This document shows positions 1,990 through 64,000 of a DNA stretch of 64,000 bases, in pieces (the stretch's first letter is position 1; the number at the start of each line of letters is the position of its first letter). A program made the position numbers and the translations under genes. The notes beneath the pieces were generated by a model. That model searched no databases and was not told the DNA's origin. It saw only the letters and a program-made list of their open reading frames with translations. This stretch comes from Octopus bimaculoides (taxonomy: Eukaryota), in NCBI RefSeq assembly GCF_001194135.2, contig NC_068982.1, forward strand, positions 104,784,991 through 104,848,990. Direction: 5' to 3'.

Positions 1990-2780
1990 NNNNNNNNNNN
2001 NNNNNNNNNNNNNNNNNNNNNNNNNNNNNNNNNNNNNNNNNNNNNNNNNNNNNNNNNNNNNNNNNNNNNNNNNNNNNNNNNNNNNNNNNNNNNNNNNNNN
2101 NNNNNNNNNNNNNNNNNNNNNNNNNNNNNNNNNNNNNNNNNNNNNNNNNNNNNNNNNNNNNNNNNNNNNNNNNNNNNNNNNNNNNNNNNNNNNNNNNNNN
2201 NNNNNNNNNNNNNNNNNNNNNNNNNNNNNNNNNNNNNNNNNNNNNNNNNNNNNNNNNNNNNNNNNNNNNNNNNNNNNNNNNNNNNNNNNNNNNNNNNNNN
2301 NNNNNNNNNNNNNNNNNNNNNNNNNNNNNNNNNNNNNNNNNNNNNNNNNNNNNNNNNNNNNNNNNNNNNNNNNNNNNNNNNNNNNNNNNNNNNNNNNNNN
2401 NNNNNNNNNNNNNNNNNNNNNNNNNNNNNNNNNNNNNNNNNNNNNNNNNNNNNNNNNNNNNNNNNNNNNNNNNNNNNNNNNNNNNNNNNNNNNNNNNNNN
2501 NNNNNNNNNNNNNNNNNNNNNNNNNNNNNNNNNNNNNNNNNNNNNNNNNNNNNNNNNNNNNNNNNNNNNNNNNNNNNNNNNNNNNNNNNNNNNNNNNNNN
2601 NNNNNNNNNNNNNNNNNNNNNNNNNNNNNNNNNNNNNNNNNNNNNNNNNNNNNNNNNNNNNNNNNNNNNNNNNNNNNNNNNNNNNNNNNNNNNNNNNNNN
2701 NNNNNNNNNNNNNNNNNNNNNNNNNNNNNNNNNNNNNNNNNNNNNNNNNNNNNNNNNNNNNNNNNNNNNNNNNNNNNNNN
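1990..2780. other. Assembly gap (N run)
   Basis: Ns. Smaller gaps at 8922-8944, 21641-21661, 28920-28929, 32126-32171 and 61528-61668. Confidence 1.
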
Positions 2781-3110
2781 GGGTGACTTACACCCACCTT
2801 TTTCACCACTTCCTTCCATCTCTGCTCATATACTCTGGCTGACAGGGTTCTCTTTTCCAGCCCTATTTTGCTCTTCAGATGGTATTTGAAGTAATTCAGC
2901 AATCCAGGGCCGGACATGTAGGACCCTGTCCCCAAACCTTCCATTCTTGTCCTCCCTATGCACTCTTTCAATACTGCTACCGTACAGAAAAAGCAAGCCT
3001 CACCTTCCTTTGAGAGTCCAGTTGGCGGTATCATCTTTATCATAGACCCAGCCGTACTCGTCCCAGATGCGACAACACGTATTCTACATAAATTCGTGTG
3101 TTGCTTCTCT
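2781..3110 (-). mobile_element. Decayed non-LTR retrotransposon ORF2 C-terminus (L1/Tx1-like)
   Basis: Frameshifted translation YVEYVLSHLGRVRL / PPTGLSKEGEACFFCTVAVLKECI...LLNYFKYHLKSKIGLEKRTLS...RW resembles recalled Tx1-type ORF2 ends; it runs into an assembly gap. Confidence 0.5.
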
Positions 3111-4314: not shown

Positions 4315-4374
4315 ATGATGGCACTTACTATGTCGGACTTGAAAGCACCGAAGCACAACGGTGATATAATGGAG
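4315..4374 (+). CDS. PUF60: PUF60 exon 1 ([20 protein letters not shown])
   Basis: ATG downstream of a promoter-like motif cluster; strong donor GAG|GTGAGT; phase 0 fits exon 2. No homology support. Confidence 0.7.
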
Positions 4375-14600: not shown

Positions 14601-17600
14601 TTATATCAAATTAAATTATATTTTTACCATTTATTTGGCTTAAAATCAAATATTTGTTGTTTCAGTTGGATTTGCAGCCAGATGACCGAGCCAAAGTCCT
14701 CAAATTGGATGTGGGTAAGTGAAAAATTGAGCAGCATCATGGTTTTTCTTTTACTGAAGATTTATGTGGCACAAACTTGTGGAAGCTACAGTTGCACTCA
14801 TATAGATATTTGACCTCATTTTTTTTTTTAAACTCCCCTCATATTGGCTGACTCTGCCACCTGATATTGGCATGGTTACAACCTGTAAACAATGTCAAAT
14901 TCATAGAACAATCTGGTTTGGAACAAAAAAAAAAAATTGATGTTGGTGTGATAAGGAAATGTGTTTCTCTAACAGTTGTATCCGCTGTTAGTTAGTGATT
15001 TTAGTTGTATTTGATATATTTATTTTACTCTATCAAAGTTGTTCAGGGTTTTCAGTATTTTTCACCCTCACTATTTATGTACCTCCTGCTAGCCATCATG
15101 CTCTCACATATATCCTCTAGTGCTGGTGCCATGAAAAACTCTACTCAATACACTCTGTAAAGTGGTTGGGATTAGGAAAGGCATACAGTTGTTGAAACTA
15201 AGCCAAAATGAGTAAGATTTGGTCTTCCTATCCTCTGGAAGTACAGCAATGACTCCTCCAGATCATGTCATCATGGAAAGTTGACTCAAAATTTTGGTGA
15301 TGACTTCTTGTTTTCATTGTTGCGGTAATAGGTGCATGATCACTGCTATTTTGTTGCAGTACACAAGCACGTATATGCCAACTTTATGTTAATTGTTAAT
15401 TTGTCTTCAGTAGAATACTCTGTATTTAGATTGTTTGAAAATTATTTAATTGGCAGAGGCATAGTACTGAGATTTTGTAGGCTTTCTTAGACTAATGAGA
15501 TCAAAATGGATTTTCAACTTGAGCTGTAGGGAAAACATGGCCAGGAATGTGGTTCTGGGGAATACGCATTTGGAAAAGTGAGGGGCTGGTTAATAGGTGG
15601 GCTTGAATAGTGATGTACAACTTCACTAGTTTAATGTTACAGAAACTGTTATAGTAAAAGTGGAAAATAAATAGTACATTTGCATAAAAATTAGTTGTGC
15701 ATTATTGAATGAATTTTTGCCAATAAACATGACTTTTCTTTTAAAATCCAAAATGGGCTCTAGGATGTTTGTGTGTGCATTGTTGCAACAATGTAATTTC
15801 AGATGTATGAGTGGTCATATTTGTGTTTTGATATTGTTTAGTATGTTTGATTGGTGAAGTTGTAGATACCAATCTGGAAATATCTTGGCAGGATAATTGT
15901 AACATAGATAGGTTTTGATTTTTTGCCAGTCAGTTAAAATGATGCTTATAACAAGAAACTAATTGATGTACTTCACTGATGCAAAAAAATTTTTAAGCCA
16001 TACAAAAATGTTACCTTTAACACACTGCAACAGTTTAGTTTTTTACTGTTTACTGTTGAAATTGATACTCTGTTATGTACCACAAATTGAGTGATTGGTG
16101 AAATACATGCTTCATGTAAATATCTTCAAATTTTTCAGCTAAATTTTTGGTGTTAAATTTTCTTTATAACATTTGTTCAGTTCAAGTTGTAGTGAAAGAG
16201 CTGTCTTTTAGGAACCATTTGCAAGTTCTGAAGACAAAATGAACTGGGAATCCTGTTGGCATTGTATTTTTATATAACAAATTTTCTAATGGATTTGTGT
16301 GTGCATGCATTTGTATGTGTGTCTGCAAATCTGTTTTTAAAAAATTAAGAATTTTTTTCTACAGCTTTGAAAAAATATTTTTGTTAGAATGAAAATCAGT
16401 TTGTGAACTGAGAAGTAGATCATATTGAAGGATTAGTATTTGTGTTCTTTAGCTATGGCAGTTGGAGGTTTAGCACTTAATAACTTGATTATGAGTTTGT
16501 TAGTGTCAACGGATTTCTTTATATTTTTGAATTAAAATTTGAGAAACCTTTTATTTTGTGTTGATTCAGTTTTATCAGTCAAATTTTCCTCAGATGTGGA
16601 ATACAACTATTATCGGAGCGAATTTTCTTAGATTACATCAACATCAGTGTTTTAAAATAACTCCCATACATTTGCAGCATTAAAAAGATGTTAAATAAAA
16701 AATAAAAATCCACACTATTTCTTGCAATAATTTGCATATGGGGATGAAAAGGAGCTAAACATGTTGATATATGTAAATTAGTTTTTGGCTTTTATAATAT
16801 TTTTCAGGTGATGAGATGCTGGCGTCTTTTGAGTAGGTCATCTTCATATCTTTCCCTTACAACCAATCAAGTACCAGCTTCTCATATCTATCTCTTTCTT
16901 TTTTCTCTCTATATTTGCAGCACTGAAAACACAAGGTCTCAAGGAGACCCAAACCTTGTACCTCAGTCTCAGACACCAGTTGCTGATGTAAGAGGAATGA
17001 TTCAGCCGAACCATCTGCTTTTGGCAGCATTATTGCAAATCTTTATTATGATATGGTTTATCTATATTTTAAAACATGTTAGTCTAGGACAGAACAGAAA
17101 TATGTTTATTTGATCAAATTTCTTCTGGAATAATTTTAAACCTAAAATCTTTACATTGCTGAAATATAAAATTTATTTAATTCATATCAATCAAGATCCT
17201 TATCTTGAAATATTTTGAGAAAATTTAGCTACTGCTTAATTTTAGCAGTAAACGCAAAAGATTTTGACTCTTTATTTTATTGAACTGCCTGGTACTTAAT
17301 GTTTAAATGCCACTTTTACATCAGCAACATATGCTGTACAGCAGACACTGTCAGTATGCAAGTAATATACAGTATCAGCAGTTAGTCTTCTTAAGCACAC
17401 AGCTTGGTCATATTTACATTGATTGGCTCAGTAAGTGTTGTGTGACAATTTTTGAAATCTTGTTGTAAAGGTGGATTATTTTATTCCTACAGTTCGTTAG
17501 CAGATATTGTTTATTAAAGAGTCTTTAGATTTTCATACTTAGATATCTAGTCTTGATTGACTTTCAAGCAATAGTTTTGCTTGTGTATCAGTAATGTTGC

Positions 17601-30188: not shown

Positions 30189-31338
30189 AATCTCTGAAGA
30201 GGCGTAGCGAATCATGCATGTACCCTCATTACATCATTTTCATCTAATAATTACAACCGGTGTACAGGAGCTATAGAGATAGAATGGGGCATGCCAACGC
30301 TAGGCCGAAACAGCTGTAAGTTTCTGTCCCTTCTCCAATTGCTAAATGTCCTTTATATCTGTAATCTTAATTGTTAATGACGTGGTATGTCATAAGTGTC
30401 TGTATATTGTGTTTTTTGTCAATTTAGTTATAAAATAAACAGATTAATCAATGGAATACCTTGTCTGTAAGTCGATGGGTACCGCATATTCTCCTCCATT
30501 TTCTCATTGCTATATAAATTTAGGGTAAAATAACCCCTTTTTACCTGCACCCACTTATTGCACTTGGTATAACACTAGTGTATATAAATAATTGGGTACC
30601 CTCCCAGCAGTATATTGGATAGATACTATCCCTTAGTGGGTTGAATCCTCAACCCCTAACTCTCTTGGATTATATGTATATGTATATTTATATATATATA
30701 TAGATATATAGATATATATATATATATATATAGATATATAGATATGTATATATATAGATAGATATGTATATATTTAGATATGTATATATATAGATATATA
30801 TGTATATATTTAGATATGTATATATATATGTGTATATAGATATATGTATGTATATAGATATATGTATGTATATAGATATGTATGTATATAGATATATGTG
30901 TATATAGATATATGTATGTATATAGATATGTGTATGTATATAGATATGTGTATGTATATAGATAGAGAGAGAGAGAGAGAGATATGTATATATGTACATA
31001 CGTGTATATATATGTATATATATCATAGTTTAACGCCCACTTTCCATGCTAGCATGGGTTGGACGATTTGACTGAGGACTGGCAAGCCAGAAGACTCCAG
31101 GCTCCAATCTGATCTGGCAGAGTTTCTACAGCTTGATGCCCTTCCTAACGCCAACCACTACGAGAGTGCAGTGGGTTCTTTTATGTGCCACTGGCACGAG
31201 GGCCACTCTCACGGTACTGGCAATGGCCACGCACAAAAGTGTTTTTTACATGCCACCTGAACGGGAGCCAGTCCAGCCGCACTATGTATATATGTATGTA
31301 TGTATGTATATGTATGTATATATGTAGATAGATAGATA

Positions 31339-31371
<33 letters not shown>

Positions 31372-33780
31372 GTAGATAGATATATATGTGTATATGTATA
31401 TGTGTGTATATATATATATATGTGTATATGTATATGTGTGTATATATATATATGTGTATGCATATGTATATTTATGTATATGTATATATCATCATCATCG
31501 TTTAACGTCTGCTTTCCATGCTAGCATGGGTTGGACAATTTGACTGTGGACTGGCAAACCAGATGGCTACACCAGGCTACAAGTTTCTACATCTGGATGC
31601 CCTTCCTAATGCCAACCACTCCGAGAGTTTAGTGGGTGCTTTTACGTGCCACCGGCACGAAGGCCATTCAGGCAGTACAGGCAACGGCCGCGCTCAAAAT
31701 GGTGTATTTTATGTGCCACCTGCACAAGGCCTGTCCAGTGGCACTGGCAACGGTCTCGCTCGAAAGTCCTTACTCATGCCTCGGGCACAAGTTCCAGAAA
31801 AGCAACACTGGGCACAGGTGCCATGACGATTTTGCTTTCGCTTACCCCAACAGGTCTTCGCAAGTATATGTGTATATATATATATATATGTATAAATATG
31901 TATATGTGTGTGTATATATGTATATATATATGTGTGTGTGTATATATATGTGCATATATATGTATATATATATATGTATATATGTATATACATGTGTGTA
32001 TATATGTCTATATATATATGTGTATATATATATGTGTGTGTGTATATATAGATATGTATGTATATATACATATATATGTGTATAAATATGTATGTATATA
32101 GATATGTATACGTGTATATATATATNNNNNNNNNNNNNNNNNNNNNNNNNNNNNNNNNNNNNNNNNNNNNNATATATATGCCCACATATATACATAAATG
32201 TATGTATATACACACACCCAGATACATACATGAGCAAGTGAAAGAGGCATTTGGAAGTAAACAGTTAAGATTGTATTAAAATGTATAGTAGAAAAAATTG
32301 TAAGAAAAAGTATGAAGTTTGTCATTTGAATGTTAAGATTTGAATAAATCTCTTTATGTGTCTCTATATGTAATGTTTATCATTTTATCTGCTTTTCTCT
32401 GCTTGCCTGGGTCATATGATGTTTCAATGAAGCAGAATTTGGTATGGCCTGTTGCTTTTGTTGTTGCCAAGCTTCACCTTGTTTTCAAGGAAGATGCCTT
32501 ATCTTCCTTGTTTATCAAACAACAAGCAGATCCATCATGTACTTACAGAGGATTGAAAGAATGATATCATTTATATGAGCAGTGATGCTTTGTCTACAAT
32601 TAGCTTGTCAACACTAGGGGAATATGCACTCAGTCTTATTCACATTCATAAAATGTAAGTGTTTGTTCTGTTCAGTACCTTTGTATTGACACTGGTTGGG
32701 TAGTAGTGATTCAGTGTGTAAAAGGCAAGTTGAATAAATTACTGAGAAACGAATATGAGATGGGTGTTAGGGAAAGGAACCAACTATAGAATACTGTCTC
32801 AAGAATCTCATCCAGCTCATGCCAGCATGGAAAAAACATGTAAAAACAACATTGGTGATTCTTGTCGTTCTAAATGTTATATATATATATATATGCATGT
32901 ATGTATGTATATGTATAATATAGTTAGAAATAACATTGTTTTAAACAATTTTCTATTGTTACTTCAAAATGTGATAGCAAGTAAGAATATATTTGTAGAA
33001 TAATTTGCCTCAGTGATAAAATTTTTTCCTCATAATATTTACATCACTTGATTTTAAGAAATTGTAATTCATGCAGCTGCAAAATGTGGTTTGGAAAGAA
33101 AATATTAAGGAATTTATTACTTGAAGGAAGACCCATTTCATGATGTCCTATTCGATTGAAAAATTATCAGCTCTTCCCTATGTAGAAAACTTAATGGAAG
33201 ATAATTTATCTAAATTGTTCCAAGCAACTAGGTATAGAAAATACTTCATTATTGTTGATGAGTAGGGTAGGGACTTTCCTTCATAGGTATGTTATCTTAT
33301 ATCTATGTGGTTCAACTAATACATAGTACGGGGATAGTTTAACAAGCTGTAAATTTATTTTATTTGAAGAATTATACAAAACTTATTGTAAAGAACAATC
33401 CTTTACTTTTCCTTGTTTATCAAAAGCATTTTCTAATTAGTTTTTGCACATTGAATCTTCTTGGCTTTTATCCCAACTGTTTTATAGCAGTTGCTGATAG
33501 CATCATTTCCTTTCTGTTCAGTACATTCGCACATTTAGTGACCCAACATTCATTAACAAAAAAAAAAATCTTTGTTGATGTAATATTAATACTGTTTTTT
33601 TGTGAAGCATCCTTCATTCTTTTCAACTAGTGTAGATTAGTGTTTAGTATTATACCCATAAAAGTATTAAATTCCCTAACACTGGCTTTATTGATACATG
33701 TAAAAAATCTGAAGTCAAAAGTGTAGTGATAGTAATTAATAATAAACATATTGCAGTGTGTCTGTGTTGTGTGTATGTAC

Positions 33781-33831
<51 letters not shown>

Positions 33832-36800
33832 ATGTATGTGTAGGTAGGTAATATATGTATGTATAAATGTACATATGTATATGTAGTGCTATTTGCTGAA
33901 AATACTAAAAGTTATGGAATATAATTTGTTAGGACTGGAGAATACTTATTGAATGAAAATATTTGCCTTGAAGGAAAATGCTTTGCTTTTTATAAACTGC
34001 ATATTCATATGGAACTTTCAGTCCATAAATAAAATTGTATAATCCTGTTAGATTTTGTTTTTGTCAACAATGCTAACTCCATGAAATCAATAAACTATAT
34101 CCTGTTTGTTTATGGGCCCCCTTTAAAAAGTTTTGATAGTGAAATAATTGCTAGGTATTTTATAGCCTTCCTGATTTCAATCTTCAGTTCAGGCACACCA
34201 AATACAGGATATTTAATTTTGTGTCTAGTTTTTGGTGATATTGGAAGATATCTAACTCATTAAAGACATTAGATGCCCTCCCTCCCATTTTCTTCCAAAT
34301 AATTGGGAGTTATTTCACTTTAATGTCACTTATACCAATAATAATATCCTAATCTTCTATACGTTAAGTTAAAAAAAAAAACCCAACAAAATGTAAGTTA
34401 TAACTTGTCAGAGGAGCAGTGTTTTATAAGAATACCATTTATTTTAGTATAAAACATTAAGCACGTTTTCCAACCTGCTCCCATATTTTTAACTCTTTCA
34501 ATGATTTTTGCCTGATCTAGAATATTCCAAGGACAGTGTCACTATTAAATGATATATTTTAGCAAATCTAGAAAGCATCTGCGTTTATTCTCTTTATGTT
34601 GTTCTTAAATGCTATTTTTCTCTCTTTTTTTGTGTTTTTATATATCAGTAAGAAGTTCAATATTGCTCGTGCCACCCTTACGGCCAGCTGTTTTATGGGG
34701 CTTTTGGTGAGACTACAGTGGCCAAAATTAGGGCCAAACTGGAGGCAATCAGTCGATCGGTGCTTGTGATGTGGTAATCCTTATTTCACATGAATATATT
34801 GTAAATTGTTTGATTCCTAAATACTGACAGCCTATATCTACTGGTGCACATCATTGATATTTTCTCTCTACGACTCTTGATTAGTAATCACTGAAACTTT
34901 TAAAGCAATATTAGTCTGGATGATCTAATATTCTTGCTCTCATACTTTAATTTTTTCAATGTATCTTCCCTTTTTATATTTTTCTCCATATCCCTTAAGG
35001 ACTATGTCTGTGCCTCAAATAAAAAAAAAAAAATCTTGTCTCTGCCCCAGTCTTCATTTGTCTTGGCCCTGTTCATATTCCGGCTCTTTTTCTTTTCTTT
35101 TTTTTTTTTTATATCATTATATAGTTTCTTCCAATACTTGTCCTATTTTTGATTGTTTATTTAACTATCTTTTGGTTTTGCTGACAGATTTGGCTGCAGA
35201 AGAACTACAAACACCACAGGCTGAACAAATAGGTCCAATTGTTGAAGGTCCCGGTGCAAAAAGAGACCAGAAACCATTTGTATTGCCTAAATTGACAGCA
35301 TCTCAACAAGAAGCTATACAGAAGGCTAAGAAATATGCAATGGAACAAAGTATTAAAAGTGTCCTGGTGCGACAGACCATTGCTCATCAACAACAGGTAA
35401 AGTATGTTTGTGTTTGTGTGTGTGTGTGTATATATATAAATAAATAAAGGGAAGACCCAGCAACTAAAGTACAGCCCAGTTAAGAGTACCCCTGATGCAT
35501 TGGTGATATGATATGCTTGAGAAGACCTGTTGAGTCAAGTAAAACCAATATTATAGCTGTAGCCAGTGGCATGTAAAAAGCACCATCTGAATGTGGTCGA
35601 TGTCAGGTCCACCTGACTGGCTCTCATGCCTGTGACACGTAAAAAGCACCATCCAAACATGGCCAGTGCCAGTACCCCCTGACTGGCTCCAGTGCTGGTG
35701 TCACGTAAAAAGCACTATCCGAACGTGATTGATGCTAGGACCACCTGACTGGCCCATGTGTTGGTGGCACCTGAAAAGCATTATCTGAACATAATTGATG
35801 CCAGGCCTGTCTGACTGGCTCCTGTGCCAGTGGCATGTACAAAGCCCCCCCACTACACTCAGAGTGGTTGGCGTAAGGAAGGGCATCCAGCTGTAGAAAC
35901 ATTGCCAGATCAAATTGGAGCCTGGTGCAGCCGCTGGCTCTCCAGACCTCAGTCAAACCATCCAACACATGCCATCACTGGAAAATGGACATTAAGCAAT
36001 GATGATGATGTGTATTATGTTTATATTTTTCATGCTAGTATATGATTTTTGATAGTTTGCATTGTTTTGATTAGCTATTTTTATATTTAGATGTCTATCT
36101 TGTAAAGTAGCTAAATAGATCTCTGTGAGTTTGATTTGTTCCAGCTTAGTCAACTGTAATGTGACTGGTTATTGAACAAAACCTTAACATGGCCCTCAAG
36201 CAGAATCAGCATGAGACAGTATGTGTGAGATAAAGCTGCTTTTGTGAATTACAAGTTCACTCTTTCACAGTTTCCTTCTAACCATTTCTCACTCCTTGGG
36301 ATTGAGTTGACCCGAGGTCATGGTAGACAATACTTACCCAAAATGTTGTGGAGTGGGATTTAATCTAATAGTTGCAAAGTGAATGGGTCATAATGTAGGA
36401 CATCTAGAAGCTGCTCAAAGATTCATTAGTATTTCATTGGTAACTCTGGGTAGCTACCTATTGTTATATTTGTTGTGAAATAAATAAATAAATAAATCAA
36501 AAAGTTCTGAGTTTCTCTTTGTTTATAGTAATTAGCCACTGTAGTTTTATCTGGAACACTTGAAGTAGAATGAGTAAACAAATTTGGTCAGTGGGCTTCA
36601 GGTCAGACAGACTATGATTATGTCTGGTTTCTTTAGAAAATTTGGAAGAGGAACACTTTTAAAGTTTCTCACTCATTCTGTTTCTAGACACAATTCATTA
36701 TCATTGTCTGAATTGTTTTCACTGTTAAAAGTTGAAATGTGATGCTTGCTGCCTTGTTTTTTGTATTTTTGCTTTAGAAGCTCCTTCAAATTCAGATTAA

Positions 36801-39800
36801 ACATGATCAGATAATTTGTCTTAACCTTTAAATACCATCTTACCTGAGGCTGTCAATTTATGTTCGAAACCCCAGCTTAATAAGAACCAAGTTATTTTAC
36901 TAACATTACTACATTATTTTAAAAATTAATTGAAACAGAGGCATTATTTTTCAGCAGAAATATGGGGGGGAAAAAAACCCAGTTTAATAGAAATATTTAA
37001 ATCAGACTAGTTTTTGTCCTTCTTATCTATATAGTAAATGTTTTGTTTTGTTTTTTTTACTTTATTGTTTTTCTATAATTTAAAACAAGTTTTTCATATT
37101 TTAGATATTTACTGTCATTTAAAATTATTCTTTCTGTTTTCAGCAAATGGCAAACTTTCAAAATACTGTTCAAAGGCAGCAGGCCTTAGCATTAATGTGC
37201 AGGTAAGTCATTTCAATTATCAAAACTAGCTTTCTTTTTGTTACTTTATCTTCATAATTCTTCCTCTCATAGTAGTGTTGGTTGGACAGATTTCATACAC
37301 ACATTTAACCTCTTTCTATTTTACATTATTTTAACTGTAATACTCAGCTTGGCTGGTCTTCCTTCTTATCTACTCTTCTTGCTAATGTTTTGATATTAAA
37401 TTTGGAGCACATCCATTTTATGTCACAATCCTGTGTAATTTCTGGCTTGGTCTGACAATGGGAACCAGATTTGTCAGTATTGTTTAGTAGCTTGCTAATG
37501 CTTGTGAGTCATTCTTTCCACAGAATGTCCAAATGTGTTGCTTTATTTTGGTAGTTAAATTTTTTTAATTATAAATTACCTTCTGTGTTGACCAGGATAA
37601 CGGAGGTTTTCTAGTGTTGTATGTGTAGTTACACAAGTTGTCTCTCTTAGTTGTGTTTCATTTTTCTATTAGTGTAATCTCAGTTCTTAAATTTCATTTG
37701 CCTAATTCACATTCAAAGTGTTTCCAATTTTAACCTATTTTCTCTTTTCTAAAATACATTAGAATCATAGGAAAAAGGTTTTTTTACCCAATTTAATTTT
37801 GAGTTATTTCCTAAAGGGTAAAATAGAATAAATTCTAAATAATTCTGTGCTGTTTATTATATGACCAATTATCAAGTCGCATATTAGAATAATAGTTTTA
37901 ATAAAGATTTTCTTCCTTTTCACAGGATTTATGTTGGTAGCATAAATTTTGAAATCAAAGAGGATACAATAAAGCAAGCTTTTTTACCATTTGGTCCTAT
38001 AAAGAGTGTCAACCTCTCTTGGGACCCTGTGACTAATAAACACAAAGGCTTTGCTTTCATTGAATATGAAGTCCCTGAAGCTGCCCAGCTGGCTTTGGAA
38101 CAGATGAATGGTGTCATGATTGGTGGTAGGAATATTAAGGTAAATTTTAATTTTTTTATCTTCTATCCCCACCAATATCCTTGTGAATTATACATGTATC
38201 ATTATAAAGGAAATATAAATTTAAAAAAAAACTGCCAATATATTTCCTTGGTGAAATCATTTAACCCTGCTTTTCTTAATAGTGTAGTTCCTCATATGTG
38301 GGTCATAAAATATTCTTTCTTTTTATTTAACTGCAACAGAACCCATGAACCCAGGCAAGCAACTTGTGAGGAAAAAACATTAATATATTAAATTCTTACT
38401 TTCTGGGATTTATTTATAGGCTCAGAACAGCCTATTAGAGCTCACTTTGTGTTTTCTTAGAAAACTAAGAAGAAAAAAAACTTGTAGAGAAAGAAGACAT
38501 ATGAATGCAGAATCAAAAATTACTTCCCCCAGTCCATATTTTAAAACAAATATTTGAAAACAAAATGTGGTGCATTTAATTTCATGAAAATAGTATTTGG
38601 TTCATTAATTTTTTGATTCAACTGATATCAGTGGTGTAAGTGAATTCAAATGATTGAGGAAGGGAAGAAATTAATGAAATTATATGTACATGTGTAAGTT
38701 AGCCTATATTTTGTACAGTGATAGAAATCTATTACTGTAGCTAGCTTCTGAGTAGCTCAGAAATAACTCAATTTAAAATGTTCCTTGATTCTGTACGATC
38801 ATTGAAAAAATACATTCACCATCATCATCATTTAACGTTCGTTGTCCATGCTGGCATGGGTTGGATGGTTTCACCAGGCTAGCACACTGGAAAGCTGCAC
38901 CAGACTTCAGTCTGATTTGGCATGGTTGTCTATAGCTGGATGTCCTTCATAATGCCAACCACTCTGAGTGTAATGTGTGCTGTTATGTGTCGCCGGCATG
39001 GGTGCCATTGTGTGACACTGCTATTGCATGCTACCGGCACGGGTGCCAATTTGCATGACACCAGTATCTGCCATGACTGATTTTGTTTGGCTTGGTTGGT
39101 CTTCTTCTCAAGCATGGACATAATGCCAATGGTCTTGGTCATTGCCTCTGTGAAGTCCCACACTTGAAAGGAACTCAGCCACTTTGCCACTGCGAGGCCC
39201 AATGCTTGAAAGGCACTCACTTGCTGTACTACAAATGATTGAAGAAAAAAAAAGTGTAAATAGTAGAAGTTCTATGAGTTCAGTTCTTTTAATAATAATT
39301 TCTTATATTGGGAGGAGTTCACATATTTATTGGTTAGATATAACCCAGTTTATAATTGATAACACAAGTTATCCATTCCTGGATGAATGAAAAGTCAAAA
39401 TTAACCCAGTATTTTTGGACTAAGAACATTTTTGTCTGTTAATCTTCTTGGTTGGTAGACTTAATCTGATTCTTAGGTATCTTTTGATAAGTTCATTCTG
39501 TTGCAACCACTTAGCCTAAGTTTTTGGTCTTAGAGTATCCTGATGTCTTGACTACAGTAATTTGTGGCTTTTTTCCTTTGTCCAATTCCTCAGTCTTGGA
39601 GGTCATGGAAAAGTTGCATGCTTTACCCTTCATCCTACAACAAAACCATAACAAATATAAAAAAATTAAAAAAAAAAAAACAAACTAATCACCATTTTAG
39701 TTCAACAAGTGGAATGTTTGTGTACACACATTTCCAAAGTGAAATGCAAAACCTTACATAAAAAAACAATTTGCATGCCATATTTTTTCACATTCTGAAT

Positions 39801-42800
39801 TTTAGAAAAAGTGAAATGTTCTAACTACAAACACCTTGTATACATAACATATAATACCTTAGAGTTTAACATAACTTGTCTTGTTTTAAAGGTTGGTCGA
39901 CCAAGCAACATGCCTCAAGCTCAGCCCATTATTGAACAGCTTGCTCAGGAAGCAAAGAATTTTAACCGTATCTACATTGCATCCATACATCAGGATTTGA
40001 CAGAGATGGATATACAAAGGTTTGTATTTGATATATATCAGAAGATACTTATCTGAGATGTGATGCAATGACATCATTTTTAAATGAATTTATTAATATT
40101 GCTAATATCAGCATTATGACTGAATATGCTGGGTGTTACAAAACAGGATTCACAGAGCATGGGCTAAAAATGAAACTAAATCTAATCCCATTTGATACAT
40201 TTTTGATAATGGAGCAGTTACGTAGTTGGTGATTAACAATGCGATCTTCTGAATTATAAGATTATGTTTCCAATTATAGACATTACCACTGATAAACTAC
40301 GTGTTCGTAATAAATCAGGTTTCACGTTCAAAATACTTCATCATAATCATCATCATTCCTCATCTAAATAAAAATTGTTTAAAAGAATTAATATTCTACA
40401 AATGTAATTATGTTTCTTAATCTATTTTTTCTTTTATTTCTTTTAGTGTCTTTGAGGCATTTGGGAAGATTGTGACTTGTAAGCTCTCTCAAGATCCTAC
40501 AAAACCTGGCAAACATAAGTATGCATTAAGTCTTTTGTGTACTTTTCTAAATTTATTTCTTCATTTCTTGTTAAATGTATGTTGCTAGAATGATACATTG
40601 AAGTTTGCTATGAAAACAAATATTCTTGAATGCAAATTTGAAAATAAATCTTTCTACAAGAATTTACATTTTCCCATTTAGAATCTAGAACCTGCTCATA
40701 AAACTATAAAATTAAACATTGATTGGATTTATTAAAATGCTAATTAGAACAAGTGTATAATTTGAATTAATAATATGAATTTAAATTTTAGTAATTTCTT
40801 TATTATGATTAAAGCTTAAAAAGTAAAACTTGCAGTAAACATGTATAAAAATCCCTTGTAACTGTACCAATGGTTTTTGTTCGTTTTGAACTGGGACTAA
40901 CTTTTTATGTTATAGAAGTTACGGCTTCATAGAATATGAAACTCCTCAAGCCTCTGAAGATGCAGTTTCATCTATGAATCTCTTTGATCTTGGTGGTCAA
41001 TATTTACGTGTTGGAAAGGTAATTATTATGCATTGCAGAAAATGATTTTTTTTTTTTATCTTATTTAATTCACATTTAATGATAGATGGTGTCTGAATTG
41101 TAGGATATTTTAAAATTTTACTGTATGAAATTGTTTTAATGTCTCTCAACAAATAACATAGAATTAACTTTGTATAAATCTCAAAGAAAACTGTTTACAG
41201 TATCATGAATAAACCTTTGTAATATTTCATTTTTATGGAAATATTGACAAGTATTAACTTACTGGAATTATAAAACACGACTGCTATATTTTTTAAGTAA
41301 TAATGTATTTTTATTTTAGTCTCAACAAAGCTTTTCATATTCATTCTTAATGTAAGGATGTATTTAAATTGTTCAACAGTTTTAAAGTTTCTTTAAAATT
41401 TAAAAAAATCAATTTATTGTGTCATCTGCTCTATTAATGATGCAAAACGATGATGATGGTATGTGTATATATATATATATATATCCCGTCATTAAGAATG
41501 AAATATCCAATTTTGAACTGAAAGTTTATTTTACTTTATCTCAACAAAAAGCAATGGAGTTAATCAAAATGTGCACCTAAATTATCAACACAGATTTTGA
41601 CATTTTATTGGTAGCTTATTTATGCTGCCAGTGAAGAATTCTGGAGAGCAAGAGGTGATGAAATCACAAAAATCTGTTTTTGCATCTTCTTTAGATTTGA
41701 AGTTTTTTCCTTGCAAAAAGTTGTCTAATGCCTGGAAAATGTGATAGTTAGTTGGTGCAAAGTCTGGTGAATATGGTGGATGACAGAACACTTTCAAGTT
41801 CAGTTCCTGTAACTTGAGTAGCGTTCTTTGTGCAACATGTGGTCGAACATTGTCTTGTAAGAGAATTGGCCTGTCTCTATTGACCAATCTTGGTTGCTTA
41901 ATTGCAAGTTCATTCACCATTTCATCCAGTTGGCTAATGTATATATCCACTGTAATTGACTTACCAGGTCTCATGAAGCTGTAGTGGATGACACCAGCGC
42001 TGGACCACCAAACAGACACCATTAGCTTTTTTTGGTGAATATTTTTTGGATTGGGTTTTAGCACTTCATCTCTATCCAACCACTATGCAGAACGCTTGCT
42101 ATTGCTGAAAAGAATCCATGTTTCATCACACATAACAATACAATGCAAAAATAGTTCGCTTTTATGCTGTGACAGCAAAGAACAGCAAGTTTCAAGACAA
42201 CGTGTCATTTGATGTTTGTTCAGTTCATGTGGTACCTATTTGTCCAGCTTCTTTACCATGCCAATTTGTTTCAGATGGTCCAATACAGTTGGAATCGAAA
42301 CTTCAAACCTTGCGAACTCATGTGTAGTTTGAAATGTATGTTTCCACTACAGTTTTCAGCTCATCATTATCCACCTTGGTCTCATGTCTACCACGGGGTT
42401 GATTTTCAAGAGTAAAGTCACCAGACCAGAACTTCTATCGATGTACAGTGTGCTCATTCACCATATCTTCATCAAACACCTCATTGATGTTTTGAGCTGT
42501 CTGGGATGCATTGGTTCCACTATGGACCTCCTATCCATAAACAACACAAATTTTTTATCTATCCATAGGTTCACAAAAATTGATTTACAAGAGAAAACTC
42601 ACAATATAATCAAACCTCGTGAATTGTATTTTGAAAAGTGATGTAACTCTTCAATGTTGTAAAACAAAGAATTGTCAGGATAGAACAGAGTTAACGACCG
42701 TCAAACTTGGTGCATAAGAAAATCGGACTTTTAATTCTTAATGACCTGATATATGAGCTGCTGATTACACCTATGACTCATTATTAAATGAAGGCTTGTA

Positions 42801-45800: not shown

Positions 45801-48122
45801 ACTGTATTCTGTTTAGTTGAAAATTAGGTACCATAGATGCTTTATCTTAAGGATTCATTAGGAGCATTTGTTTCAACGAATTCTATTTGAGATAATTTTA
45901 ATAGTATGCATGAAAATTAGAATTATATCCTGGAATGTAATTCTGAGGAATCATCTCAGCCTAGTGATTGTGACCATGTTCACAGATTATACATGAATCC
46001 ATATACTTTTCACATTGCAATAAATGTTTTGGAAATAAAAGAGTTTATCTAAGAATTATTATTTTTTTTATCATGTGCAGGTATTACACCTAATCCAGGA
46101 ATGAATCTGGCCTTAGGCAAAAGTGTGAGTGACCAAGCAAAATCAGCTTTATTAGGAATACTTGGCAAAGGTATTGATCCTTTGCAGAAGAAAGCACTGG
46201 AAGAAGAACAATCGCAGACATTAGATCAACAAGAAAACATGAAAATCAGTGGCAGTAACGCACGACACATGGTCATGCAGAAACTAATGCGAAAATCAGA
46301 TGTAAGTTATAGGAGTGTTGATTTGTTGAATATTATCATTTCTTGAGTAGTTAGCAATAATTGTCTGAGGAAATTTGTTGTAAAGTCTCATTGTTCAGCC
46401 TTGCCTGAATAAATCCATGGTAGTGAAATAGCCGATTAATTGTAAGTTATATGTATCATCTCTAGTAACATAAAATCATGTCAGTCTGGGCTGGTTCCTA
46501 GGTGATGGGAATTCTATTTTTGTGACCATGGGGTCTTAAGAATTCTTTTTGTAAAACTAATTTTAGAGATGGTAGAAAATTAGTTTGTTTAATAACTACT
46601 TAATTAACGAACCACTAAAGTAACCTAACTGATTTTTGGGTGAAAAGATTAAGATTGTTGGAGAAATAGACTTTTCTCTTCATTAATATTCATAATAGAA
46701 TTCAGCATTACAAACATTTTCTCAATTTATGGATATATTTAGATTTGTCAAACTATTCAAATGATGCTGTCATTTAAAAAAAAAAAAAGTAATTAAAATT
46801 CAAAGAGATAAAATTTAGCAAAAATGTAAAGATGTTTTAATTTTCTTTTTTATCTGCCATTGTGATTTCATTGTTTCAGTGCCGTGTGATGGTTTTACGG
46901 AATATGGTTGGTCCAGAAGATTTGGATGATGAATTAGAAACAGAAGTTACAGATGAATGTGGAAAATATGGTGTTGTCAATCGAGTAATAATCTATCAAG
47001 AAAAACAAAGTGAAGATGAAGATGCTGAAATAATAGTAAAGATTTATGTGGAATTTTCTAAGCAAGAAGGTAATTTTTTTTTTTAATATTCACAATTGAA
47101 TAATTCCCTTCCCTACAACCCATCTTCCTAACACTCTCTTCCTTCCACCAAGGTTCATTGCTTGCTGTGTTTCTTGCCCTTTGCACCCTTGTGAACCCCT
47201 ATTCATACTACTCATCACCTGGCACAAAGCCATCTCCTTTCATACTACTCCTTTCTCAGTTGAAGGGTCTTGCCCTGCAAGTTACTTGGTAATCTCACTG
47301 CTGTAACAGCAGTACCCTCAGTAGATGGTTGGTATTAGGAAGGGCATCCAGTTGCAGAAATATACCAAAGCTGACAGCTTGGTGCAGTCTTCTGTATGTT
47401 TAAAATTGTGTTGCTTTTATATTCTTGGAGTGGTTGGTATTAGGAAGGACATCCAGCCATAGAAATCCTGCCAAATCAGACTGGAGTCTGGTGCAGCCCC
47501 TTAACTTACCAGTTCTGGTCAAACTGTTCAATGCATGCCAGCATGGACAACAGACGTTAAATGATGATGACATATAGTATTCTTGTGATTAGAATTGGTA
47601 GGTGGGAAACTGTACAGAAGCCTGTTGTATATCTCTGTGTGTACAAGTGTGCTAAGCCTTTGGGGTGTTTATTTCAGCTTTTCTTTATATGATACTGGGT
47701 CCAATGATGTTATGTTTACATCTCCTGTAAATATGTCCTGTACCTTGGAATAAAGTAAATAAAGAGACTTGATGAACAGGTATAGGTTGATTGATGGCAG
47801 AAAAGATATCTGGTTGCCAAATACTACTTCTTGTCTAATCCATATCAGCATGGTAATGGATATTAAAAGACAATGATGATGATGCTTGTTTGAGTGAATT
47901 CTTCTGCAAAACAAGTGTTCCCTTTTTAAAAAAAAATTGTATTTTTGATGTCTAAAATGCTGCTCTGCATATTACTTGAATTTTATTGTGGACTTAATTT
48001 TTCTTTTCACAGAAGTGGAATTAGCCATCAGTTCACTAAACGGAAGATATTTTGGTGGTCGAATTGTCAAAGCTGAAACGTACGACCAAGATATGTTTGA
48101 TGCAAATGATCTCTCAGGATGA
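4315..48122 (+). CDS. PUF60: Poly(U)-binding splicing factor PUF60 / half pint, full 13-exon gene model (1887 nt CDS including stop, 628 aa)
   Basis: Spliced translation gives [28 protein letters not shown]1 ([10 protein letters not shown]), [14 protein letters not shown]2 ([16 protein letters not shown]), an Ala-rich linker and a C-terminal UHM ([12 protein letters not shown]...LNGRYFGGR...DLSG*). All introns are GT-AG with matching phases. Exons 1-2 are assigned by splice signals and phase only. Confidence 0.96.
4482..4490 (+). promoter_or_regulatory. YY1-like motif in the first intron
   Basis: CGCCATCTT about 110 nt into intron 1. Confidence 0.35.
7940..8285 (-). repeat. Two tandem copies of an abundant SINE-like repeat with (AAT)n flanks
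   Basis: Repeated ...ATCGACCCCAGTG...TTTATCGACCCCGAAAGGATG(A/G)AAGG...GCGGAATTTGAACT...; degenerate relatives occur at about 280, 19570 and 56110-56250. Confidence 0.6.
10860..11330 (+). pseudogene. Degenerate DD37D (maT-type) transposase fragment
   Basis: Broken translation DEKNFHLDK...[22 protein letters not shown]...QDLAPCHT...[11 protein letters not shown], similar to the element at 59670. Confidence 0.65.
11430..11806 (-). mobile_element. tRNA-derived SINE containing an internal (TA)n
   Basis: Reverse-strand head AGGAGTGGCTGTGTGGTAAG...GGGTTCAGTCCC (B box) ...GCACCTTGGGCAAGTGTCTTC; CpG-rich. Decayed relatives at about 12200-12290, 20170-20310 and 52470-52600. Confidence 0.75.
13018..13130. 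mobile_element. Mariner terminal fragment
   Basis: GTGGGGTGGTGCTGAAAAGTTCTTGGCTT...TTTTATTCAACAT...CACGCATTTATTGCAG resembles a mariner end; no partner end found. Confidence 0.35.
14666..14714 (+). CDS. PUF60: PUF60 exon 2 ([16 protein letters not shown])
   Basis: Acceptor ttgttgtttcag, donor G|GTAAGT; phase 0 in, phase 1 out, linking exon 1 to exon 3 in frame. Confidence 0.7.
27070..28400 (-). mobile_element. Decayed RTE-clade LINE (RT region)
   Basis: Minus-strand fragments [29 protein letters not shown]...[14 protein letters not shown] and [15 protein letters not shown], with many stops and frameshifts. Confidence 0.75.
30188..30323 (+). ncRNA. Minimal type-I hammerhead ribozyme motif (Penelope/retrozyme-like)
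   Basis: CTGAAGA core 30194-30200; stem II GGCGTAGCG (30201-30209) pairs with CGCTAGGCC (30298-30306) at 8/9; GAAA 30307-30310; palindromic stem III ACAGCTGT; GUA cleavage triplet; short stem I AAATCT/AGTTT. Confidence 0.65.
31022..31860 (+). repeat. Two copies of the abundant (CAT)n-TTTAACG...CCATGCT(A/G)GCATGGGTTGGA repeat family
   Basis: Copies start near 31022 and 31490, sharing GATGCCCTTCCTAA(C/T)GCCAACCACT. Confidence 0.8.
35188..35396 (+). CDS. PUF60: PUF60 exon 3 (DLAAEEL...[25 protein letters not shown])
   Basis: Hallmark PUF60 N-terminal motif; acceptor ctgacag, donor CAG|GTAAAG. Confidence 0.95.
35560..36010 (-). repeat. Same repeat family in reverse orientation, with an internal array of about 65-nt units
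   Basis: About four units of GTAAAAAGCACCATC...CCTGACTGGCTC, then GAGTGGTTGGCGTAAGGAAGGGCATCCAGC...GATGATGATG. Confidence 0.8.
37144..37202 (+). CDS. PUF60: PUF60 exon 4 ([20 protein letters not shown])
   Basis: Matches the [11 protein letters not shown] motif; acceptor ctgttttcag, donor AG|GTAAGT. Confidence 0.95.
37926..38139 (+). CDS. PUF60: PUF60 exon 5 (RRM1)
   Basis: [71 protein letters not shown]. Confidence 0.97.
38818..39230 (+). repeat. Same repeat family, forward copy
   Basis: CATCATCATTTAACGTTCG...CCATGCTGGCATGGGTTGGATG...GCCAACCACTC. Confidence 0.8.
39892..40019 (+). CDS. PUF60: PUF60 exon 6 (linker and start of RRM2)
   Basis: [42 protein letters not shown]; donor AG|GTTTGT. 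Confidence 0.96.
40447..40518 (+). CDS. PUF60: PUF60 exon 7
   Basis: (S)[23 protein letters not shown](K); acceptor tttttag, donor AA|GTATGC. Confidence 0.95.
40916..41018 (+). CDS. PUF60: PUF60 exon 8 (RRM2 RNP1 to end of RRM2)
   Basis: (K)[34 protein letters not shown]; branch-like ACTAAC at 40896-40901; donor AAG|GTAATT. Confidence 0.96.
41482..42751 (-). mobile_element. Full-length defective mariner (D,D34D class) in PUF60 intron 8
   Basis: About 30-bp imperfect TIRs (TATCCCGTCATTAAGAATGAAA / TTTTAATTCTTAATGACCTGATA) with TA flanks, 1.27 kb long. Transposase remnant 41585..42566 contains [18 protein letters not shown] and [10 protein letters not shown] (third Asp changed to Asn) and has in-frame stops. 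Confidence 0.92.
42989..43135 (+). CDS. PUF60: PUF60 exon 9
   Basis: [36 protein letters not shown]...; donor TTG|GTGAGT. Confidence 0.95.
44517..44841 (+). CDS. PUF60: PUF60 exon 10 (Ser/Thr/Ala-rich low-complexity linker)
   Basis: Open frame between acceptor ttcttgtgtag and donor G|GTGAGT; phases 0 and 1 fit the neighbouring exons. Confidence 0.9.
45248..45390 (+). repeat. Same repeat family, degenerate forward copy
   Basis: CATCATTTAATGTCTTCCATGCTAGGATGGGTT...CCTAATGCCAACCACT. Confidence 0.7.
46081..46301 (+). CDS. PUF60: PUF60 exon 11
   Basis: ...[29 protein letters not shown]; donor GAT|GTAAGT. Confidence 0.95.
46880..47069 (+). CDS. PUF60: PUF60 exon 12 (UHM domain, first part)
   Basis: [63 protein letters not shown]. 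Confidence 0.97.
47300..47570 (-). repeat. Same repeat family, reverse copy or copies
   Basis: GAGTGGTTGGTATTAGGAAGGACATCCAGC...GCCAGCATGGACAACAGACGTTAAATGATGATG. Confidence 0.8.
48013..48122 (+). CDS. PUF60: PUF60 exon 13, terminal (UHM R-x-F motif, stop)
   Basis: (E)[35 protein letters not shown]. Confidence 0.96.
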
Positions 48123-61792: not shown

Positions 61793-62714
61793 TATATATA
61801 GATATATTATATATGTATATATGTACTTTATATATATGTGTGTATGTATGCATATGTATAACATGTATAATATAATATATATATGTTTGTTTGAACAGCC
61901 TGCTGAAATTTGTTGAAACTGGCTGTTTCCACTTCTGCCTCTGAAAGGTGATGATTCTATGTTCCTGAATGAAGTTATAATAAATGTCATGAGAACGTTT
62001 CTACTGAAGACGTATTCTTCATGTAGAAGAGATTTTTTTCAACAACATATTTACATCTCAGAAAGATTATTGTTGGTGTTAAAGTTTAAAATCAAACTCA
62101 CACTACATAGATTTGTGCAATATGAATAACAGTCAATAAATACAAACTATAAACAACCTTATTATATTTCTTTCTTTCTTTTTTTTTTTTTATAATACAT
62201 TAGGAATGGCTTATGTATTCAGAGGTGTCTGAACAAAGATTATATGATATTAGTGTTTTCACACTTGAAATACATGATTTAATGGAATCACCAATCAGAG
62301 AATGTCAAGGGATTGATACAATCATCATACTGAACCACTCATGCTGAAAGATTAACTTGTTTGATTTTGTTAATAAAAAATATGGTAATTAAACAATTGT
62401 ATAGTAAAATAATGAGCAAAATAAATTAAGTATAATATTCAATGTAAAATAAACAAAAAAAAATTGACAAAAATTATTAAAGTTATTTATCTATCTAATG
62501 AGATATACCACTACAAAGAATGCTATATACTATTGGCTCTGATTCAAAGCTAAAGTATGATTGTCCTTCAAATGGATGGCTTTGCAATCTAATGTGAGTC
62601 TAAACTTTTAAGATGTTGGGATATCAGCTATCATTGCATTGAAGCATGATTTTTCTTCATATCAACAACAATAGATACAACATGTGAGGAGACTATACAT
62701 GTGTTGTATATATA

Positions 62715-63594
62715 NNNNNNNNNNNNNNNNNNNNNNNNNNNNNNNNNNNNNNNNNNNNNNNNNNNNNNNNNNNNNNNNNNNNNNNNNNNNNNNNNNNNNN
62801 NNNNNNNNNNNNNNNNNNNNNNNNNNNNNNNNNNNNNNNNNNNNNNNNNNNNNNNNNNNNNNNNNNNNNNNNNNNNNNNNNNNNNNNNNNNNNNNNNNNN
62901 NNNNNNNNNNNNNNNNNNNNNNNNNNNNNNNNNNNNNNNNNNNNNNNNNNNNNNNNNNNNNNNNNNNNNNNNNNNNNNNNNNNNNNNNNNNNNNNNNNNN
63001 NNNNNNNNNNNNNNNNNNNNNNNNNNNNNNNNNNNNNNNNNNNNNNNNNNNNNNNNNNNNNNNNNNNNNNNNNNNNNNNNNNNNNNNNNNNNNNNNNNNN
63101 NNNNNNNNNNNNNNNNNNNNNNNNNNNNNNNNNNNNNNNNNNNNNNNNNNNNNNNNNNNNNNNNNNNNNNNNNNNNNNNNNNNNNNNNNNNNNNNNNNNN
63201 NNNNNNNNNNNNNNNNNNNNNNNNNNNNNNNNNNNNNNNNNNNNNNNNNNNNNNNNNNNNNNNNNNNNNNNNNNNNNNNNNNNNNNNNNNNNNNNNNNNN
63301 NNNNNNNNNNNNNNNNNNNNNNNNNNNNNNNNNNNNNNNNNNNNNNNNNNNNNNNNNNNNNNNNNNNNNNNNNNNNNNNNNNNNNNNNNNNNNNNNNNNN
63401 NNNNNNNNNNNNNNNNNNNNNNNNNNNNNNNNNNNNNNNNNNNNNNNNNNNNNNNNNNNNNNNNNNNNNNNNNNNNNNNNNNNNNNNNNNNNNNNNNNNN
63501 NNNNNNNNNNNNNNNNNNNNNNNNNNNNNNNNNNNNNNNNNNNNNNNNNNNNNNNNNNNNNNNNNNNNNNNNNNNNNNNNNNNNNNNNNNNNNN
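62715..63594. other. Assembly gap (N run) flanked by (TA)n
   Basis: Ns. Confidence 1.
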
Positions 63595-63641
<47 letters not shown>

Positions 63642-64000
63642 ATGTGTATGTAAAACGGCTGAATTATATTTCGTCCTTGAATTTGGAGGATTCCCAAAAA
63701 GATTTCTAATATAGATTCTTCATATTTTGCTGGTAGCTTACTGGTGTAAGCTTGCGAATATGAAAATAATACTTGTATATGGTGTGTTATGTGAATTTAT
63801 GGAAAGGAATCCCATAAAACTCGTTAAAAATGGAGAAGAGAAGATGTTAAAATGTAACAGAATTTTAATAATTAAAATTCTCTTACATTTTAACATCTTC
63901 TTTTCTCCATTTTTAACAAATTTGTGAGTTTAATGTATATATATATATATATGTATCAGATTGGAGCCTGGTGTAGCCATCTGGTTTCACCAGTCCTCAG

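Follow-up and report, generated by a model that had tools for sequence, protein, structure and literature searches.

Poison Exons in Splicing-Factor Genes

Ultraconserved poison cassette exons reportedly occur in the genes for SR proteins and hnRNPs. The element considered here is an exon-like island in intron 2 of the PUF60 gene of Octopus bimaculoides, contained in a 64,000-nucleotide (nt) stretch of contig NC_068982.1 (positions 104,784,991 to 104,848,990 of the forward strand; hereafter the window, from whose first letter all positions are counted), and it is probably a poison cassette exon of ancient origin, which breaks the reading frame and so leaves the mRNA non-productive. The island resembles the SR and hnRNP exons as an alternative exon in a splicing-factor gene that introduces an early stop, in a conservation that exceeds that of the coding exons and extends into the flanking intron, and in its presumed role in homeostatic control through decay. 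It differs in that the gene is PUF60 and the phylum another one, in that its invariant run measures 128 nt rather than at least 200 nt, in that decay and feedback are inferred for PUF60, and in that the element appears to be older than the split between mollusc classes while being frozen only in cephalopods.

RBM39, a member of the same related family of 3' splice-site RRM/UHM factors as U2AF65 and PUF60, regulates its own abundance through inclusion of a poison exon, for which binding sites and feedback have been shown experimentally (PMC10477243). The PUF60 cassette, in contrast, is known from anatomy and conservation only, and the two exons are likened by role, not by sequence. A regulated cassette exon has also been described in rnp-6, the Caenorhabditis elegans homologue of PUF60/half pint, where the reported regulator is the hnRNP F/H protein SYM-2 (PMC2265522). 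The likeness here is that of a PUF60-family gene with a regulated alternative cassette exon, presented in work on splicing factors that are themselves subject to regulated splicing; the difference is that SYM-2 is named as the regulator in the worm, and the comparison is one of description, not of gene position or homology. Decoy exons and detained introns are said to represent a further arrangement, which the octopus locus recalls in having a conserved exon-like element within an intron that is retained in polyadenylated-type contigs whose other introns are spliced. The locus departs from that arrangement in that the donor of the element is joined to the next exon in several molluscs, which makes it, at least partly, a real exon.

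PUF60 is an essential, dosage-sensitive 3' splice-site factor, and loss of one copy in humans leads to a developmental syndrome. How its level is set is poorly described. Poison exons are known in other splicing-factor genes, and none was found described for mollusc PUF60; the full-text literature that was searched likewise yielded no poison exon or autoregulation of PUF60 itself.

Anatomy and Coding Outcomes of the Cassette

The window is eukaryotic in character (GC 0.33, CpG observed/expected 0.33) and carries PUF60 on its + strand. From exon 3 to the stop codon the exon model comprises 11 exons between 35188 and 48122, with AG/GT boundaries throughout, and is 100% identical to the annotated O. 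bimaculoides "poly(U)-binding-splicing factor PUF60-B" (P0137), while exons 1-3 were placed with the annotated canonical isoform X3 (P0261) by tblastn and direct reading of the sequence. The island sits inside intron 2, which is ~20.5 kb long, at 414 nt ahead of exon 3, and the exon numbering and reading frame given in an initial annotation, made from the letters alone, are correct (Table 1).

Two acceptors and two donors delimit the island, at the positions which that annotation had assigned to them and which were confirmed on re-reading. The acceptor CAG/TAAG/ follows an extended U-rich tract, its CAG ending at 34648 and its AAG at 34652, so that the exon may begin at 34649 or 34653; the donors are G/GTGAGA after 34706 and TG/GTAATC after 34773. 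This anatomy of tract, AG and GT donors, which is that of usable splice sites, is present and invariant or nearly so in three cephalopods. The two acceptors are spaced by 4 nt and shift the frame, and thus do not form a NAGNAG pair, in which the spacing is 3 nt and the frame is kept. Over its 70 nt the cassette acceptor region has a U content of 0.60, the highest among all acceptors in the PUF60 gene. By an approximate scoring, the distal donor is among the weakest in the octopus gene and the internal donor (TTG/GTGAGA) is mid-range and better.

The island is also compositionally distinct, as had been claimed, with a GC content of 0.49 against 0.33 for the window and four CpG dinucleotides at an observed/expected ratio of 0.56 against 0.33. 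All four CpGs are kept in the closest relative examined, and the copy in a third cephalopod likewise has four. A repeat or transposon was rejected as its origin: in agreement with the initial annotation the island is single copy within the window, where a short interspersed element (SINE) has at least five copies.

When the four splice combinations were recomputed with the true exons 1 and 2, their frame outcomes proved to be as first described. The 54-nt form (34653-34706) stays in frame and adds 18 residues. The 58-nt and 121-nt forms each create a TGA that spans the junction with exon 3, and the 125-nt form runs into the TGA at 34708-34710, ending translation after 56 residues; shifted frames run into stops within exon 3. 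The stop of the 125-nt form lies 1731 nt before the last exon junction and those of the 58-nt and 121-nt forms 1667 nt before it, so that all three non-productive forms exceed the distance of 50-55 nt to the last junction.

Conservation in Cephalopods

Relatives were retrieved by searching with the exon 3 peptide and then collecting the contigs that encode the matches. The closest is L001 (ENA assembly ERZ21867824), and a third cephalopod is represented by an RNA contig, L008 (SRR27666087); both are distant from octopus. The coding exons of L001 are 78-84% identical to those of O. bimaculoides in DNA and its introns are otherwise unalignable, whereas 34579-34805 is 97.4% identical over 227 nt, including 128 consecutive invariant bases. 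The similarity starts and ends abruptly around the island and its flanks (Table 1). L008 agrees with L001 in this conservation and breaks the 128-nt run once. Four-fold degenerate sites are identical between octopus and L008 at 73 of 221 positions (33%), with the NG86 estimate of synonymous divergence (dS) not computable; neutral sites are therefore saturated, which places the island under very strong purifying selection. Strictly defined, ultraconserved elements have at least 200 bp at 100% identity across distant species, and the longest invariant run here is 128 nt; the island nonetheless resembles such elements in its behaviour.

Table 1. Features of octopus PUF60 around the intron 2 cassette, with window positions and identity to two other cephalopods.
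Feature	Position	Strand	Sequence and reading	Identity
PUF60 exon 1	4315-4374	+	ATG at 4315; mapped from X3	
PUF60 exon 2	14666-14714	+	16 residues + G, phase 1; tttcag/TTGG...GTGG/gtaagt; upstream partner of the cassette	
Upstream intron	34380-34578			41% (L001)
Extended U-rich polypyrimidine tract and 3' splice-site region	34579-34648	+		70/70 (L001), 69/70 (L008)
Tandem acceptor	34646-34652	+	CAG/TAAG/; read directly	invariant in three cephalopods
Candidate poison cassette exon, 125 nt, proximal acceptor to distal donor	34649-34773	+	frame shift +2; TGA at 34708-34710	
Island, first part	34649-34706			58/58 (L001)
Internal donor	34707-34712	+	G/GTGAGA after 34706; overlaps the TGA of the proximal-acceptor frame	
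Island, second part	34707-34773			62/67, 92.5% (L001)
Distal donor and conserved downstream intron flank	34774-34805	+	TG/GTAATC after 34773	31/32 (L001)
Second conserved intronic block	34819-34861	+	TAAATACTGACAGCC...GGTGCACATCATT	95% (L001); present in L008
Remaining intron	34862-35187			50% (L001)
PUF60 exon 3	35188-35396	+	DLAAEELQ...AHQQQ; downstream partner of the cassette; model equals annotated PUF60	77.5% (L001)

The pattern of change points to constraint at the level of the RNA rather than of a peptide, since the 18 codons of the 54-nt version show no synonymous change between octopus and L001 while four-fold degenerate sites elsewhere are so rarely identical. Constraint on a peptide is further disfavoured by three observations. 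All five substitutions in 34707-34773 alter the amino acid in the extended frame that the initial annotation had drawn. L008 carries a 2-nt insertion in its cassette (contig positions ~335-340, window 34741; GGAGAGGC in place of GGAGGC). Lastly, the 18- or 41-residue peptide is present in none of 5.8 billion proteins, none of which has even three 5-residue words in common with the translation, and homology of the 41-residue translation to known proteins was accordingly rejected. The insertion could be genuine or an assembly error; the L008 cassette measures 127 nt with it, and its length stays a non-multiple of 3. An antisense coding exon, suggested by a 71-codon open frame on the minus strand, is disfavoured by the same insertion and by the lack of synonymous-type variation. 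The island core had no exact match among the JGI metagenome contigs scanned for it.

A GC-rich conserved island within an intron of a housekeeping gene might also be a small RNA gene hosted by that intron, or an enhancer that acts as DNA, with the likeness to splice sites being incidental, and conservation alone cannot separate a function in RNA from one in DNA. We regard this explanation as barely credible. No Rfam match reached the gathering score in the window and none fell on the island at E up to 10; the island folds no better than shuffled sequences on either strand (z +0.05 to +0.75) and shows no compensatory changes; and RNA from other molluscs shows the corresponding element spliced to exon 3. 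An intronic snoRNA or miRNA was rejected, with no Rfam match and no stable fold, and an editing-type duplex with exon 3 was rejected as well, the only inverted repeats being A/T-rich and of the kind expected by chance.

A structural link between the cassette and the conserved block at 34819-34861 is at present a lead only. RNAalifold, run on the three cephalopods, predicts pairing of this block with the 3' part of the island (34743-34753 and 34705-34719), where none of the 66 predicted pairs is compensatory and the z scores are +0.3 and +0.5. The block itself lies beyond a variable T/A-rich indel, at 46 nt from the distal donor, and contains TACTGACAG, a branch-point-plus-AG-like sequence that repeats the CTGACAG of the exon 3 acceptor; its counterpart in L001 is preceded by ~50 nt of T-rich sequence.

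The Cassette in Other Molluscs

Bivalve and gastropod PUF60 loci have a comparable element in this intron as well, 0.3-0.9 kb ahead of exon 3. In it a U-rich tract is followed by an AG, by 83-127 nt of GC-richer sequence and by a donor of GTAA type, and the tract shares the motif ATG..TTTTCT..TGTGTTTTT(C)ATATA..AG with the octopus cassette. These loci probably belong to pteriomorph and heterodont bivalves and to gastropods, an assignment made from the named proteins that their exon 3 peptides match. Three of them (L002, L007 and L003) are mutually linked by nhmmer with E values of 1e-10 to 1e-13, and a fourth (L064) was found by profile. Profiles built from non-cephalopod sequences only have their top match in the 64-kb window at 34606-34678 and 34610-34654, and the same profiles match the orthologous spot in L001 and L008. 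In the alignment the octopus distal donor GTAATC stands opposite GGTAAAG donors, and a motif AAAUNAGRC...GGAG is shared. The cassette of the other molluscs is equivalent in position and probably homologous to the octopus island, and the constraint which the initial annotation had predicted is borne out both by the cephalopod comparison and by this similar cassette in bivalves and gastropods.

Measured from the first AG after the tract to the conserved or observed donor, the cassettes are 125, 125, 127, 110, 98, 83, 92, 118, 124 and 127 nt long, and none of these lengths is a multiple of 3. An earlier formulation, according to which all lengths equal 2 modulo 3, was dropped when it failed on the addition of L008, L016, L017 and L064. 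With entry in phase 1, in-frame stops are present in 7 of 9 translated copies (the L008 copy excluded), and the remaining two put exon 3 out of frame.

The 4-nt tandem acceptor is not conserved in other molluscs, and this bears on the mechanism originally put forward, a three-way switch built from tandem acceptors and two donors, which would yield an 18-residue isoform from 34653-34706 and transcripts destined for decay from the other combinations. The 54-nt form does keep the frame, octopus and L001 do not differ at any of its positions, and the internal donor TTG/GTGAGA outscores the distal one in octopus. The GTGAGA donor, however, is found only in octopus, the site reading GTGTGA in both L001 and L008 with loss of the A at +4, and other molluscs have a single donor that aligns to the distal site and no in-frame version. 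The switch would moreover require use of an AAG acceptor 4 nt behind a perfect CAG, together with the internal donor. A CAG acceptor normally prevails over an AAG located 4 nt downstream. The peptide, whether of 18 or 41 residues, occurs in none of the proteins searched, and its 18 codons lack synonymous change despite saturated four-fold sites. Such a switch is very unlikely. Of the original proposal of a constrained alternative exon that toggles between an isoform and nonsense-mediated decay, what stands is an exon-like alternative element that is constrained and whose inclusion is non-productive, as indicated by the near-ultraconservation, the mollusc cassette, its splicing in RNA and the early stop. 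The toggle itself, with the notion that a 4-nt shift of the acceptor chooses between isoform and decay, is not supported; in the other molluscs neither the tandem nor the internal donor has a counterpart.

RNA Evidence and Annotated Isoforms

Splicing of the cassette is recorded in RNA contigs, which are assemblies of public RNA-seq runs and from which isoform proportions cannot be derived. One bivalve is represented by five contigs from as many runs (L011-L015), which read from the U-tract through CTACTAG into a 92-nt cassette and directly on into exon 3. The bases that precede exon 3 in them form no acceptor and an in-frame TAG lies 7 codons upstream, from which it follows that the donor of the cassette has been spliced to exon 3. 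In two gastropod-like contigs (L016 and L017) the cassettes end in ...AGAGGATGCG/ and are likewise joined to exon 3. All seven contigs still hold the upstream intron, and since the cassette is already joined to exon 3, this intron can be removed only through splicing of exon 2 to the cassette; the molecules are therefore committed to inclusion or retention. Two further contigs, L008 from a cephalopod and L009 from a bivalve, have lost every downstream intron and are unspliced across the cassette and on either side of it.

Retention of this kind is also what would be expected if the splice sites of the island engaged the spliceosome unproductively as a decoy, so that intron 2 or its 3' part is detained, the transcript stays nuclear and inclusion is a minor outcome. 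Contigs from three lineages (L008, L009, L010 and L011-L017) keep the intron around or upstream of the cassette with downstream introns gone, and the octopus X1/X2, Mercenaria and Tegillarca models start inside the intron. The frequency of in-frame stops and the absence of any cassette length divisible by 3 nevertheless suggest selection on the included form, assembled contigs give no isoform ratios, and decay would deplete the fully spliced inclusion forms, which would hence be under-seen. A decoy function in place of inclusion is accordingly considered unlikely.

An alternative first exon would account for the same contigs in another way, with a promoter in intron 2 upstream of the island, use of the donor only, and a PUF60 protein that is truncated or altered at its N-terminus. 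No contig contains a junction between exon 2 and the cassette and all of them extend upstream, and in two gastropod-like transcripts (P0165 and P0172) an ATG in the cassette is in frame with exon 3. The part that is best conserved across molluscs, however, is the U-tract with its AG, which is an acceptor; conservation ends at 34579 with nothing promoter-like upstream, and the island lies in a CpG-depleted gene body, unlike the CpG-normal zone at 1-12 kb. The 5' ends of the contigs are scattered from ~220 to 1100 nt upstream, and no ATG in the octopus cassette reads into exon 3. A first exon at this site is thus a distant prospect.

The poison exon reading offers an explanation for several odd gene models. 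The first 76 residues of octopus isoforms X1/X2 are the translation of intron 34959-35187, directly before exon 3, and these models reflect intron retention and no real N-terminus. Octopus X4/X5, like the corresponding O. sinensis and O. vulgaris models, are 541 amino acids long and start with MEQSIKS, the open reading frame that begins there being exactly what remains once the 5' frame breaks, and they are consistent with inclusion of the cassette. N-termini that are intron-derived or internally started occur in many mollusc PUF60 entries, among them those of Mercenaria, Aplysia, Gigantopelta, Crassostrea and Ostrea. A poison exon would account for the intron-derived N-terminus of X1/X2 as well as for X4/X5 and the many mollusc "isoforms" with an internal methionine.

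Several observations weigh against a poison exon in octopus. The junction between exon 2 and the cassette appears in no contig of any species, all of which extend into the upstream intron, and L008, the cephalopod contig, has neither side of the cassette spliced. Cassette junctions are known from bivalve and gastropod-like RNA alone, and inclusion in octopus is a prediction. The match between the cephalopod element and that of other molluscs, though top-ranked, is weak (E 0.1-0.7). Finally, an invariance of 128 nt exceeds the known needs of splicing signals, and another functional layer may be present. It is conceivable, though improbable, that a pan-molluscan poison exon was frozen in coleoids (128 nt, 70 of them intronic) by a second, overlapping function, candidates for which are long-range RNA pairing with 34819-34861 by which use of the two donors is gated, or a switch with several outcomes, the in-frame 18-residue insertion among them.

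A Model for Control of PUF60 Levels

As a poison exon, the octopus cassette would act as follows. The spliceosome would use the acceptor at 34649, behind the 70-nt U-rich tract, together with the distal donor after 34773, and so place 125 nt between exons 2 and 3. The resulting frame shift would bring translation to a stop at the TGA at 34708-34710, ~1.7 kb before the last junction, and the included form would be expected to undergo nonsense-mediated decay. By a second route, partly spliced forms that keep the flanking intron may accumulate and would be equally unproductive, and the net result of both would be a lowered amount of productive PUF60 mRNA.

A weak exon behind a long and invariant U-tract is what is expected if its use depends on a 3' splice-site factor that binds such tracts, and the tract is of the type on which PUF60 and related U-binding 3' splice-site factors act, which makes negative feedback the likeliest logic of control. 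If PUF60 itself is the regulator, more PUF60 would lead to more inclusion of the cassette and thus to less PUF60 mRNA, closing a negative feedback loop. Feedback by PUF60 is plausible, and we hold it tentatively; other U-binding proteins fit equally well. The support for autoregulation is circumstantial, consisting of the most U-rich acceptor region of the gene and a reported preference of PUF60 for extended tracts, and binding of PUF60 to the cassette tract is putative. According to a preprint, PUF60 acts on 3' splice sites that have extended tracts, at 40-60 nt upstream of the site (bioRxiv 10.1101/2024.06.25.600605, citing Kralovicova 2018).

Other Features of the Window

A second conserved block in intron 2, at 16776-17049, is 91.5% identical to L001 over 281 nt. 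It contains an almost invariant exon-like core of 67 nt (16921-16987) that lies behind a pyrimidine-rich tract and reads ...TTTGCAG/CACTGAAAAC...GCTGAT/GTAAGA. Placed after exon 2, this core is open and shifts the frame, leading to a stop in exon 3; combined with the 125-nt cassette it gives 192 nt, which restores the frame, and the TGA remains. The core is probably a second PUF60 poison exon. It had also been considered as exon 2 and was rejected in that role, the true exon 2 being the one listed in Table 1.

A true tandem acceptor, TAG/AAG, is located at 40913-40918 at the start of exon 8, and it explains the annotated isoform pair that differs in ...GKHKSYGF... (X1 and X3) versus ...GKHNYGF... 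(X2). The CpG observed/expected ratio is ~0.8-1.4 across the first 12 kb of the window, which include exon 1 at 4315, and ~0.3 thereafter, a profile that would fit an unmethylated promoter zone and, beyond it, a methylated gene body. Extremely low GC (0.10-0.19) characterizes 2001-3000 and 62001-64000, presumably owing to A/T-rich simple repeats. The SINE-like repeat (catcatcatcgtttaacgtctgctttccatgctagcatgggttggac) is found at 31022-31283, 31490-31800, 35799-36007, 38820-39009, 47423-47570 and 63961-64000, in copies that are 70-90% identical and often adjoin (TATG)n-type microsatellites, and it is absent from L001-L007.

Implications

If the poison exon reading is true, splicing-coupled homeostasis would extend to the PUF60 branch of the U2AF65/RBM39 family, and the octopus locus would provide a clear cephalopod case in which ultraconservation at the level of single nucleotides is tied to a testable RNA mechanism.

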